From the sequence record NC_071015.1: a DNA stretch of 64,000 nucleotides; one strand, written 5' to 3'. Positions 11,696 through 16,157 of the stretch are shown one piece after another (position 1 is the first letter of the stretch; every line of letters begins with the position of its first letter). The notes under the pieces were generated by a model. That model was not told where the DNA came from, searched no databases, and saw only the letters and a list, made by a program, of their open reading frames with translations. The position numbers were made by a program, and so were the translations under genes.

Positions 11696-12148
11696 TTAAA
11701 TTGTGAAGCGAGCCGATACCGGAAAGAGTCGACCGCGTAGCAACACGACCTCTTTGTCCTCTGTAATGACCAGAGTCATTCTAGAGAGAAAAAGATCCTG
11801 GCGTAAAATATTATCCGGCCCGTAGGGAATTTGGATATCGCTTCTTAAAAGTTTATGACCGTTAACGGGCTGACGGATTGCGATACCGTGTTTGATGATC
11901 GCATCAGGAACATTAGCTTTGATTACCGCTTCGACATCCGGCTCGCTTTCCCGATCCTCGTTCATGTGTAATATGACGTACAAGCCCTTACCCATAATTT
12001 TAACGGCATCGGCGAGCGGTAGTTTATTCCCATCCCCAAATCTTTTTATCAGGTCACCGATCTCACTGACCATTTTATCCGTTATTTCTTGTTCCGACGG
12101 AGTCAGTCCACTGATAGGGTATTGTACTTCAGTTGCTTTAGACATCAT
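11696..12148 (-). CDS. Hypothetical protein
   Basis: 150-aa ORF in operon; SD GAGG. Confidence 0.55.
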   Translation of the reverse strand: MMSKATEVQYPISGLTPSEQEITDKMVSEIGDLIKRFGDGNKLPLADAVKIMGKGLYVILHMNEDRESEPDVEAVIKANVPDAIIKHGIAIRQPVNGHKLLRSDIQIPYGPDNILRQDLFLSRMTLVITEDKEVVLLRGRLFPVSARFTI

Positions 12149-12154
12149 TTTACC

Positions 12155-12982
12155 TCAGTTTAAAAGTAACCAGCCGCTAGGGTCTTTAGGTAATTCGCCG
12201 TTTTCCAGTTCAAGATGAACATCAATCCGATCACCACGAATGGCCAGAACGTAATCAGATTGGCTGGAAAATAGATTTACATGATCACTGCCGGTTTCCC
12301 ATCCCTTCCAGTCGTCTTCAAAGTAATGGGTTTGAATAGCAGTCCGCGGTTTAGCAGTCAGTAACTTTCCGATGATTTCCGTTACTTTCTTAACGTTGGT
12401 GCCTTTGTCATTGGGCATGAAATAACATATCTTGATTTCAGGCTCCGAGTTACGGATCAGATCGCTGATCATGTACATATCTTCCGTAGGAAGAAGTACA
12501 TCCAGATCGTCATCACGCAGCGCTTCCAGATTTTCTTTATCTAAAGCCTGAGTATAGAACCGAGGACCTTGGGGAACAAACGCCGCCTTATAGACATAAA
12601 GGTTGGAGCCTTTGTCAATAAAGAGCCCTACCTCTGCCAAAGAAAGTTGTTCTTTGGTGATGACCGAATCTTCAGCCAATGTAACTTCACCATTATCGGG
12701 ATCCATAGAGCCATGGACAACGGTGACCTTGGCATTAGGAAGCAATACCGAGACGTTGTTAACAATGCGGTCTACTTTTGCATTATTATCTTCATCGCCA
12801 ATAACTTCATTGTAAAGAGAAAGAATAAAAATCTCATCCGGATTGAGAATTCGCAACAGCAGTTCGATGGGATATTGCTTATCACCATATGACTTATAAT
12901 CTCTGAAGAAGTAAGCAACCTTCCTGCGATCCACTTTACTTTCTTTCTTCACCACACCTGAAACAATACTTGCTAATGACAT
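12155..12982 (-). CDS. Hypothetical protein (alpha/beta, possibly two domains)
   Basis: 275-aa ORF; SD GAGG. Confidence 0.55.
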   Translation of the reverse strand: MSLASIVSGVVKKESKVDRRKVAYFFRDYKSYGDKQYPIELLLRILNPDEIFILSLYNEVIGDEDNNAKVDRIVNNVSVLLPNAKVTVVHGSMDPDNGEVTLAEDSVITKEQLSLAEVGLFIDKGSNLYVYKAAFVPQGPRFYTQALDKENLEALRDDDLDVLLPTEDMYMISDLIRNSEPEIKICYFMPNDKGTNVKKVTEIIGKLLTAKPRTAIQTHYFEDDWKGWETGSDHVNLFSSQSDYVLAIRGDRIDVHLELENGELPKDPSGWLLLN

Positions 12983-12997
12983 AATGACCTCTGATAA

Positions 12998-13414
12998 TTA
13001 ACCTGGCTGCCAAACAAAATCTGGTTCTTCAGGTAAGATGGTATAAGGTGGGACTGAGACACCACCCGCGGAATTAACGTTCACGATTTCAATCGACCAA
13101 TCTAATCGCATTATGAGTGCAAGATCGGCGGTTTGAATTTTCTTCCCATCAACTTTGGTATCGTGAAACGCATAAGGAGGGCTGACTTTATCCTGACCTT
13201 CAGGAATGGGGCGACGATAAACCAGGTAAGTATCAAATTCCAGTTCATTGGGATCAAAAGACGCTGACTCAATACGCCCCAGTACTTTGTCAAGTTTGTC
13301 CACATTAAGCATGTTTTTCAAGGAATCATCAAAAGTATGACCCGGTTCAACTTCCAGCATGACGCAAACAGTTTTCGGACTGAGGTCCTCTAACAATTTT
13401 TCAAGAGTCAACAT
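12998..13414 (-). CDS. Hypothetical protein
   Basis: 138 aa; SD GGAGG. Confidence 0.6.
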   Translation of the reverse strand: MLTLEKLLEDLSPKTVCVMLEVEPGHTFDDSLKNMLNVDKLDKVLGRIESASFDPNELEFDTYLVYRRPIPEGQDKVSPPYAFHDTKVDGKKIQTADLALIMRLDWSIEIVNVNSAGGVSVPPYTILPEEPDFVWQPG

Positions 13415-13431
13415 AACAACCTCCGCATAAC

Positions 13432-13459
13432 AGGAGCTACAGGTTTCCCCATAGCTCCT
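13432..13459 (-). terminator. GNRA-loop hairpin terminator
   Basis: Minus-strand AGGAGCUAUGGG-GAAA-CCUGUAGCUCCU (two G-U pairs), followed by GUUAUG. Confidence 0.7.
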
Positions 13460-13467
13460 TAGTTAAG

Positions 13468-13641
13468 TTATCTAGATAAATATGTTTTAACGTCTTCAGC
13501 AGTTACATTATCAAGCCCTTTTTGAAAAGCAAGCTCAACAACCAAAGAACGTTTTATTTTCATCTGTGTTTCCGTTACCAGTCTTACCAGTAACGCGTCA
13601 ATTTTTTCATCGACGTTTCTTGACACATGAATCGTTGGTAT
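13468..13641 (-). CDS. Unannotated small ribbon-helix-helix-like DNA-binding protein (AUA start or amber read-through)
   Basis: (M)PTIHVSRNVDEKIDALLVRLVTETQMKIKRSLVVELAFQKGLDNVTAEDVKTYLSR*; AGGA 7 nt before ATA; in frame with upstream TAG. Confidence 0.55.
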   Translation of the reverse strand: MPTIHVSRNVDEKIDALLVRLVTETQMKIKRSLVVELAFQKGLDNVTAEDVKTYLSR

Positions 13642-13650
13642 TTTTAGATC

Positions 13651-14475
13651 CTACAAAAATACTTTCTTAACATCATTAAGATACGTTAAGAACTTTTTGC
13701 CGCTTTCTTCACCAAAGAAGATAAACGCGCGCTGGGCATACATAAGACGATCGGTAGAAATGCCGACCGCATACCGCCCATCAGGAAGACAGAACCTGAA
13801 TAGACGGACGTTAATGTCGCGAAGTTCAGGAACGGTCAACTTGTATTCCATAGCACCGTTCGTTGTCGCCTTGATCCCTTTAATGAGATCGTAGATAAAG
13901 GCCGTCCCTTCAAACTCCAGCTGGAACATTTCAAACGCATCGACAAACTCTACTTTATGAGGAAGTTCGGGGCGCTTCTTAAACTCCCACCAAGCAAATT
14001 TATCCTGATCCCCAAAATAGTCTTTACCGACTACAGACGTAAAGACTCCACCGTGGTCCGTGATAACGGTCTCCATTTGGTTTTTATAATTTCCCCAATA
14101 GAAACAGTTAAATGCACTCAGTAAGGCAACGAACGCCTCTAAGCCTTGAATAGACACTTTTCCAAATTGGCAGTTATTGGTGGAGACACTGACCTGATGA
14201 CGATGATAGTCTTTGCCGTTAAAATGCACCGGCTCTCGACCAAAGCTGAATTTGTCTTTAGGTGTACTTTTAACTTTACTCATTAACGAGACAATATCAT
14301 ATACTTCGTCTCTGTTAAATGACGGGCTTGTCCACCTGCCGGATGTCAGACGACAATGATCTTTAAAAATCTCTAAATGGGTGATGCGACCTGGATCAAC
14401 GTGCATTACCGCTAACGGTTTTGGCGGAATGTAGTTAAATTTATTATACGGGGCAACAGGTGTTGATTCTTTCAT
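13651..14475 (-). CDS. Hypothetical protein with repeated beta-rich + helix units
   Basis: Start moved to MKEST (SD GAGGAG); ends in TAG. Confidence 0.6.
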   Translation of the reverse strand: MKESTPVAPYNKFNYIPPKPLAVMHVDPGRITHLEIFKDHCRLTSGRWTSPSFNRDEVYDIVSLMSKVKSTPKDKFSFGREPVHFNGKDYHRHQVSVSTNNCQFGKVSIQGLEAFVALLSAFNCFYWGNYKNQMETVITDHGGVFTSVVGKDYFGDQDKFAWWEFKKRPELPHKVEFVDAFEMFQLEFEGTAFIYDLIKGIKATTNGAMEYKLTVPELRDINVRLFRFCLPDGRYAVGISTDRLMYAQRAFIFFGEESGKKFLTYLNDVKKVFL

Positions 14476-14551
14476 GATAAGCTCCTCGCTTATGTTGGTT
14501 GATGACATTTGTCAAAGGCTCCTCAGTCCTCCTGAGGTCACCCTGTATTAC

Positions 14552-15487
14552 TTACCGATCTTGCAGGAAATATTTTACGCCACCAATAAAGGTACGCAGA
14601 TGGTCAAAGTTGGTTTGATCCACCATGAACATCACCTTGTTATTAGTCGGTGCCATATCGGTATTAATGGTCAGCCATATTTTCCCGAAGGACTGCATGG
14701 TACTAATATAGGTGTTGTATTTCTTTAAAATAGGATGCTTGGTAAAAAGTAAATGAAGATGATCTTTATCGAGATTATCCTCAAGCTTTTCCAAACTTGC
14801 ATGAAGCGTTTCAATGAACTCTAACCAGGTCATGCCAGAGATGTGGTTAGACGCCCAGAAGAGTTCAGTACGACCATATCGCAGCGTAAGCTTCCCACTG
14901 TCCCCGTTTTGCACATAACGTAAGAACGACATGGGAACGTCATGACGATGATCACCGTGATGGGTTACCAAGAACATGGTCTGTTCCCGTTTCCCATTCG
15001 TATAGACTTCAGTGGTGTGGAATGGACAATCGGTTCCCTTCGGATTGGTTTCTCGGAAGTTCACCAACGACCCAATCAGATTGGTATAGAAGCTGTTAAC
15101 TTCGTCATGTGGAATGTTGTATCGCTCACCGTTGTCCAGGAACCACATCTGACGACAGTTAAAACGAATCCGCCCAATACTGGTGGTTACGGTGTAATCT
15201 TTTTCCGGGAACATCTTTATCCCGCTCAACAGGTGATTCAGTTCCGTGATCATCTTGCCCGCATCGGTAAAATTGAAGAACGCCGAGCGTTTGTTTTTGT
15301 TGTAGTTGAACTGCGCCAGCGGGGTGTTCAACTTAGCGGTGCTGGATCTCACGGTAGGGTGGTAATGAATCAGGAAGATCGGGTTGGTGGTATTCAGTAC
15401 TCGCGTAATACGTTTGGCACTACGATGGTAGCTTTCAAGCGTGTCACCATCAAACGAATTCAGATTGACTGCGGTAGCGATAGACAT
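14552..15487 (-). CDS. Hypothetical protein, possible distant paralog of 13651..14475
   Basis: Start moved to MSIAT (SD AAGGAG); C-termini align (GKIWLTINTD...VKYFLQD vs GRYAVGISTD...VKKVFL*D). Confidence 0.6.
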   Translation of the reverse strand: MSIATAVNLNSFDGDTLESYHRSAKRITRVLNTTNPIFLIHYHPTVRSSTAKLNTPLAQFNYNKNKRSAFFNFTDAGKMITELNHLLSGIKMFPEKDYTVTTSIGRIRFNCRQMWFLDNGERYNIPHDEVNSFYTNLIGSLVNFRETNPKGTDCPFHTTEVYTNGKREQTMFLVTHHGDHRHDVPMSFLRYVQNGDSGKLTLRYGRTELFWASNHISGMTWLEFIETLHASLEKLEDNLDKDHLHLLFTKHPILKKYNTYISTMQSFGKIWLTINTDMAPTNNKVMFMVDQTNFDHLRTFIGGVKYFLQDR

Positions 15488-15546
15488 ATTGAACTCCTTG
15501 TCGTTCAATAAAGAAAACGTTAACTTTGTTGTTAGTTAATTAATGT

Positions 15547-15579
15547 CTGAGATAGACACGTTAATAATATCTATCTCAG
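15547..15579 (-). promoter_or_regulatory. Candidate early promoter bracketed by 10-bp inverted repeat
   Basis: CTGAGATAGA-cacgttaataata-TCTATCTCAG; loop carries the ATATTATTAACGTG core shared with 11399. Confidence 0.6.
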
Positions 15580-15584
15580 TTTAG

Positions 15585-16157
15585 TTAGAAGGGTAATTCT
15601 GTTTCCATAGCAAACTGCATGAGTCTTTCTACGTCTACCTCTACTCCCTCATACGGTGCAGTAACAGCCCTGTGGAGTAAACAGGCACCAAAGAAATGTT
15701 CGGTAACGTTAAGTCGATCAATCGCCATCTGCGACAATTTGATCACCCCAATGACTTTAATGATCCCGACTTCATTAATCTCCAGCCGATAAGACAAAAG
15801 AGTGCCAGCAGACCAAGCTGGATCAATAACCAGTCCCGCAATCAACTCGTCAATAGTTTTAACTTCTTTCGTTCTTTCTCTTATACGGGAATACTCGACT
15901 TCGCCAATCGAAGTACCTACAAACCGATCCATCATCGGTCTGAGTTTTTCTTTGGTGATTAAAAAGGTTCGGTTGCCTACAGGAGAGTATTTGTTAAAGA
16001 ACGTCAAAATGCATTCAATCGTTCCATCTTCTTTAATGTCGTCTTTAGAAATAAGACGGCCTTTTTCAACGGATGCAGGTTGTACACCCACATCTTTAAA
16101 TTCCTTTACTCGCAGATCAATTGTGTCCTGATATTGCTTAGCGTCAAACGTTTCCAT
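15585..16157 (-). CDS. Degenerate prohead-protease paralog (catalytic residues lost)
   Basis: GEVEYS vs MEVEHP; IDPAWSAGTLLSYRL vs YDDTNICGLISEIKF; FGAC vs VSIR. Confidence 0.45.
   Translation of the reverse strand: METFDAKQYQDTIDLRVKEFKDVGVQPASVEKGRLISKDDIKEDGTIECILTFFNKYSPVGNRTFLITKEKLRPMMDRFVGTSIGEVEYSRIRERTKEVKTIDELIAGLVIDPAWSAGTLLSYRLEINEVGIIKVIGVIKLSQMAIDRLNVTEHFFGACLLHRAVTAPYEGVEVDVERLMQFAMETELPF

Follow-up and report, generated by a model that had tools for sequence, protein, structure and literature searches.

The 64,000 nucleotides analysed here (sequence record NC_071015.1; hereafter the window) come from the genome of Kosakonia phage Kc263: positions 13300-14600 of the window match positions 199300-200600 of MZ348422.1 with 100% identity, and window coordinates are converted to those of MZ348422.1 by adding 186000. 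Kc263 is a 253,740-bp myovirus placed in Branisovskavirus, which has no other member. In GenBank, the interval 13415..13650 is empty and is flanked by hypothetical genes of 274 and 138 aa, all on the minus strand. Numerous products in the Kc263 record carry names that are hard to credit in a phage and look like over-interpreted weak matches (e.g. photosystem II protein J, nuclear pore glycoprotein, apolipoprotein A-I and neurotoxin BmK X); the annotation of MZ348422.1 should not be relied on. Nothing from Rfam was found within 12000-16000, and scans for sigma-70 promoters and terminators returned background level only.

The 274-aa gene (QYN80099.1; 13651..14475, minus strand) ends in ...KKVFL followed by a TAG at 13651..13653. 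Behind this TAG, 60 further codons of the same frame contain no stop (DLKIPTIHVS...YLSR) until a TAA at 13470..13468 of the minus strand. This open frame contains a small conserved gene at 13468..13641 (minus strand; 57 codons plus TAA), which is unannotated in GenBank and whose predicted product is MPTIHVSRNVDEK...YLSR. The first codon of the gene is ATA (13639..13641), located 9 nt past the upstream stop, and an SD-like AGGA (13649..13652) that overlaps the TAG lies 7 nt before it. The first ATG of the frame does not come before codon 30. An in-frame GTG at 13624..13626 is a possible fallback start, with no GGAG, AGGA or GAGG in the 18 nt preceding it. On the same strand, the 311-aa gene (14552..15487) ends in ...KYFLQDR. 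The TAG, the open frame, the GTG, the spacing of AGGA and ATA, and the FLQD of one gene end against the FL*D of the other had all been described in an earlier reading of these letters made without database searches (the sequence-only reading), and each was confirmed by script.

A 12-bp hairpin is located at 13432..13459 (minus strand), after the stop of the small gene and before the ribosome-binding site of the next gene. The 76-nt stretch containing it was predicted to fold at -25.2 kcal/mol (z = -3.7), and none of 200 shuffles folded as well. There is no U-run behind this strong hairpin, which may serve in processing or stabilisation rather than as an intrinsic terminator. A 9-bp A/U stem enclosing the SD and the start codon was also considered and rejected, as it was no better than shuffled sequence (z = -0.6).

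The 60-aa translation of the open frame matched phrog_5219, an uncharacterised PHROGs v4 profile of 63 positions, with an E of 1.7e-7, residues 5-58 aligning to positions 3-56. From two large protein searches and a profile search came 20 homologous clusters (P0001-P0022) of 56-82 aa, within a length class of 56-85 aa for the homologs, which aligned over the full length with a best E of 1e-27. Among Kc263, L006 (~96% DNA identity to Kc263) and L005 (~76-83%), dN/dS was 0.094, 0.105 and 0.062. Because of the phrog_5219 match, the 20 homologous clusters and the low dN/dS (0.06-0.10), we regard this frame as far beyond chance and, on these comparative grounds, as a real conserved gene missing from the annotation; the sequence-only reading was right to claim a hidden gene here. 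All homologs start with MP[TV]xH, in which M1, P2 and H5 are invariant, and the invariant residues of phrog_5219 and the clusters are M1, P2, H5, L21, A38, G42 and T47. The N-terminus that had been proposed, MPTIHVS..., matches that of every homolog. A 64-aa 'TetR family' ORF of Kc263 showed no paralogy with the small gene.

Members of the phrog_5219 family and of P0001-P0022 start with ATG, and the Kc263 copy alone starts with ATA. The start was read in 19 relative loci, and in every one of them ATG stands exactly where Kc263 has ATA, preceded by AGG, GGGG or AAGGA at a spacing similar to that in Kc263. One of them, L004, an 877-bp metagenome contig (ENA ERZ761619), matches Kc263 at 876 of 877 positions; the sole mismatch is the third base of the start codon, ATG versus ATA; the k-mer coverage of L004 is only ~1.3x, and its ATG agrees with the other relatives. 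Further contigs of the ERZ761619 phage were sought for its background divergence from Kc263, and none were found. In L006 and L007 (~96% identity), the junction between the two genes is identical to that of Kc263 and the start is ATG.

Because all relative loci read carry ATG, including the nearly identical L004, ATG is shown by this comparison to be ancestral and ATA to be derived and unique to the Kc263 record. A single G-to-A change on the coding strand at window position 13639 (record position 199639; T on the plus strand, A on the minus strand) would have turned ATG into ATA. Either the sequenced stock had mutated very recently, or the consensus is wrong at this base. This is the pair of explanations to which the sequence-only reading had itself pointed in the event that a tblastn-type check returned ATG in all relatives. 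The Kc263 genome is a de novo Illumina assembly with Sanger sequencing at ambiguous positions only (PMC8402661). The small gene was passed over by gene callers because its start codon became ATA.

Another copy with an altered N-terminal part was seen at L034:440-620 (ENA ERZ17989550), in which a run of A7 instead of A6 after codon 12 shifts the frame. The gene caller had restarted at an out-of-frame ATG, which gave the 48-aa P0005. Either this is a second allele with N-terminal damage, or the assembly is in error at low coverage.

Some product could still be made from the Kc263 allele. Ribosomes ending at the TAG or binding the AGGA could start at AUA with initiator tRNA, which would yield the same normal protein in roughly 1-3% of the amount made from AUG. 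In E. coli reporters, the AUA start gave about 1-2% of the AUG output (0.02-3% across constructs; bioRxiv 10.1101/063800). The Kc263 allele would at best be a strong hypomorph, if it is not an artefact of the record, and is probably weakly expressed. The rest of the small gene is intact apart from the start codon, and a copy without further damage is also compatible with an AUA start that is tolerated or functional.

The sequence-only reading went further and suggested that AUA initiation serves to keep a regulator scarce. On this view ATA would be a selected feature limiting a potent regulator to very few copies, as the AUU start does for infC. The AGGA at 7 nt and the upstream stop 9 nt away make coupling possible, the ORF is otherwise intact, and low-level AUA initiation does occur in E. 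coli. A selected regulatory start, however, should have been kept by the closest relatives if by no others, and ATA was found in 0 of the 19 relative loci read, including L004, L006 and L007. Of the features of programmed non-AUG initiation, the SD at working distance (AGGA, 7-nt spacer) is present, and conservation of the codon in orthologs is absent. The suggestion did not hold up against the relatives, and we consider programmed initiation at AUA quite improbable.

We consider it even harder to believe that translation begins at the GTG at 13626, although this is the first canonical start codon of the frame. The resulting 52-aa product would have a truncated N-terminus lacking M1, P2, T3 and H5, at which conservation within the family is highest; no SD precedes this codon, and no homolog starts at its position. 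The earlier objection that this GTG lacks an SD and would delete the DNA-reading strand was borne out in so far as what would be lost is the conserved MPTxH N-terminus.

The other proposal of the sequence-only reading was amber read-through, in which some ribosomes read the TAG as sense and fuse a 60-residue domain to the 274-aa protein. The frames of the 274-aa and small genes are indeed continuous, TAG ends fewer long ORFs of the Kc263 genome than either of the other stop codons (11 of 213), and the small gene is in frame with its upstream gene in several relatives too. But the 274-aa gene is conserved in Pseudomonas phage OBP (OBP_288) and Erwinia phage AH04 (gp62) and nowhere carries a C-terminal extension: its orthologs in L005, AH04 and OBP end within 2 residues of the Kc263 stop with no small gene behind them, and L006 shares this position of the C-terminus. 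The TAG is the true stop of the gene. In L005 and L034 the small gene lies directly behind the ortholog of the 311-aa gene, and in relatives further away its upstream neighbour is an unrelated gene or a tRNA-like 3' end. Of the 11 junction types, 5 have the small gene in frame with the gene before it (binomial p = 0.29), and in L012 two in-frame TAA codons are present.

The properties of the domain itself also speak against a fusion. Its N-terminal Met-Pro is invariant, every occurrence returned by a search unrestricted in length was a free-standing small protein, and on plasmids (see below) it is N-terminal, never C-terminal. Furthermore, ARAGORN found only tRNA-Asn(gtt) and tRNA-Ser(gct) in the whole genome, and no suppressor tRNA. 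What is conserved at the junction, as the alignments indicate, is a stop between the two ORFs. The stop is shifted between homologous junctions, TTG-TAG-GAT-CTA-AAA-ATG in the Kc263/L006 form (written here with ATG) versus TTG-CAG-GGG-TTA-TAA-ATG in the L005/L034 form. Because the upstream neighbours differ, a stop always intervenes, the 274-aa orthologs have no extension and there is no suppressor tRNA, amber read-through is left with next to no probability and we treat it as excluded. By the same comparisons, the small gene is shown to be an independent cistron with its own SD. We consider it very probable that this is a real, free-standing gene of the phrog_5219 family, a cistron separate from the 274-aa gene, whose ATG was damaged to ATA by one base change.

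The 311-aa gene had been called a paralog of the 274-aa gene. The last ~15 codons of the two genes are visibly alike at the DNA level (minus strand; 13654-13700 and 14552-14600), although no significant similarity was found between the whole proteins (BLASTP E 4.4; hhalign probability 0.5%), for which paralogy is not demonstrable. The resemblance of FLQD and FL*D exists because the junctions, that is, the gene ends, are homologous at the DNA level. Depending on the phage, the small gene follows the shared ~15-codon end of either the 274-aa or the 311-aa gene. It was probably moved between the two sites by recombination, as the arrangement of the shared ends suggests.

Other changes of gene order were observed in the same stretch. 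In L006 (6158-7272), a 1.1-kb insertion carrying a 337-aa gene with no Pfam match sits precisely at the small gene's 3' end (window 13474-13485), and in L005 the small gene is at a different site than in Kc263. The stretch is a hotspot of gene-order change. At L017:1673-1732, from a soil metagenome, the small gene starts a few bases past an apparent tRNA 3' end (GGTTCAAATCC...CCA). Before the 274-aa gene, a conserved intergenic block at 14476-14545 (minus strand) contains the hairpin CCTCAG-GAGGA-CTGAGG, followed by CCTTTGACAA... and then by GCGAGGAGCTTATC-ATGAAAGA. The part of the block with the ribosome-binding site and the start is conserved out to AH04 and OBP, whose annotators took an upstream ATG, giving an 'ISEELIMKE' N-terminal extension.

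Relatives of Kc263 among the jumbo phages carry the phrog_5219 family: its members lie on contigs of 178-271 kb and on fragments beside a phiKZ-type prohead protease (Peptidase_S80). Among GenBank phages only Kc263 has a member, and none was found in 185,579 species genomes. Two distant members, L012:2620-2922 and L021:1368-2048, are near Pfam matches of Tad2-like and Acb2/Tad1-hairpin type, which are anti-defence families. Because of these anti-defence-type genes nearby, the family gene was assigned to accessory regions of the L012 and L021 phages.

The domain also forms the N-terminus of hypothetical proteins of ~203-205 aa on 14 enterobacterial plasmids (Pantoea, Klebsiella, Raoultella and Kosakonia). 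Examples are L032:4001-4618 (NZ_CP143523.1) and L033:4001-4609 (NZ_CP054998.1), which start with MPTKHID. The plasmid proteins WP_137231155.1 and WP_044265848.1 show 41% identity over 56 residues and share with the phage family the MPTxH start, V34, A38 and G42; they carry a C-terminal extension of ~150 aa, whereas the phage domain stands alone. The plasmid gene is followed by an overlapping gene for 270-293 aa, with weak SLATT and DUF6232 hints only, and the pair adjoins PIN-domain, AAA-ATPase or TrlF genes. From this organization, the pair looks like a two-gene module.

We modelled the small protein with AlphaFold2. With an alignment of 21 sequences, the monomer had a pLDDT of 83.8, with helices at 8-25, 31-41 and 48-56 and an extended stretch at residues 1-7 (pLDDT 63); a single-sequence model, in which helices A and B were merged, was superseded by this one. 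We infer a 57-aa protein composed of an invariant extended N-terminal tail (MPTxH) and three predicted helices. The shape is compatible with a ribbon-helix-helix (RHH) fold and equally with a three-helix bundle plus tail. An RHH strand would form only in a dimer.

Searches for known folds gave little. In the Pfam search the Kc263 peptide had no match, and RHH_1 was matched by 1 of 10 family members at E 0.12, no better than several HTH families. The hhalign probability against P22 Arc and Mnt was 0.2%, which is background, and sequence and profile searches of the PDB and NCBIfam were empty or at noise level. Foldseek gave two PDB matches with E > 7, neither of them RHH, and nothing with E < 4 in BFVD; it has little power on helical models of 57 residues.

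Several other candidates were rejected. PADLOC returned nothing beyond a partial match to the candidate family C3a223 (E 7e-4 over 26 residues). Matches to cholera-toxin A2/CtxA (PDB 1xtc_C, E 1.3; phrog_1862, E 0.14) were chance matches of one amphipathic helix. A38-x3-G42 with V46-T47 resembles the turn of an HTH, but the would-be recognition helix is acidic (AEDV), single members matched GntR, AsnC and HTH_6 at E 0.009-0.03, none significant, and hhalign against P22 Cro gave a probability of 0.2%. L018 proved to be a TetR protein that matches only in its helix 1-2 turn. A tautomerase-like fold with a catalytic N-terminal proline was rejected as well: the conserved hydrophobic residues 34, 37, 38 and 41 are helically spaced, and AlphaFold has a helix at 31-41. 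A small DNA-binding or partner-binding regulator is most likely, and an RHH fold with an RHH-type dimer is a real possibility that we nevertheless lean away from. It is safest to describe the protein as a small regulator or adaptor for which a free N-terminus is important.

A more far-reaching reading can be drawn from these data, in which the Kc263 allele is a natural hypomorph that, through coupling to the upstream stop, still yields the normal protein from AUA, and the family is a new regulatory domain that depends on its Met-Pro-Thr-x-His N-terminus and is common to jumbo phages of the nucleus-forming type and to two-gene plasmid modules among defence-like genes. We regard this combination as unlikely. 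Overall, the locus represents an ordinary annotation gap and an ordinary start-codon lesion, not a special translation trick. Absence of ATG behind an in-frame stop appears exotic in one genome and becomes ordinary once relatives are consulted. The result is mainly one of annotation: Kc263 has one conserved gene beyond its record, with a lesion in the start codon, of which users of Kc263 as the type of Branisovskavirus should know. The family, with an invariant N-terminus in both jumbo phages and plasmids, could merit a structural or DNA-binding test.

Among known systems, Kc263 itself resembles the jumbo phages of the phiKZ/OBP type, which likewise have split RNA polymerase beta/beta' genes and tubulin; both are annotated in the Kc263 record. 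As for the start codon, regulatory non-AUG starts are conserved among orthologs, for example that of infC. In this respect the Kc263 gene differs from infC-type starts, as its ATA is confined to one record. It is similar to the AUU of E. coli infC and to the AUA, AUC, AUU and CUG starts of Hecht et al. in having a near-cognate codon behind a normal SD.

As for the protein, it is as small as RHH repressors (P22 Arc, Mnt, CopG and MetJ) are, and it has in common with them an N-terminal segment in which polar and hydrophobic residues alternate (T-I-H-V-S), followed by two amphipathic helices, and basic and Ser/Thr residues (K-R-S/T) ahead of helix 2. Unlike in these repressors, the loop between the helices has 5 residues instead of a tight G-x turn, a third helix is added, and the K-R-S/T motif is lost in the plasmid homologs.
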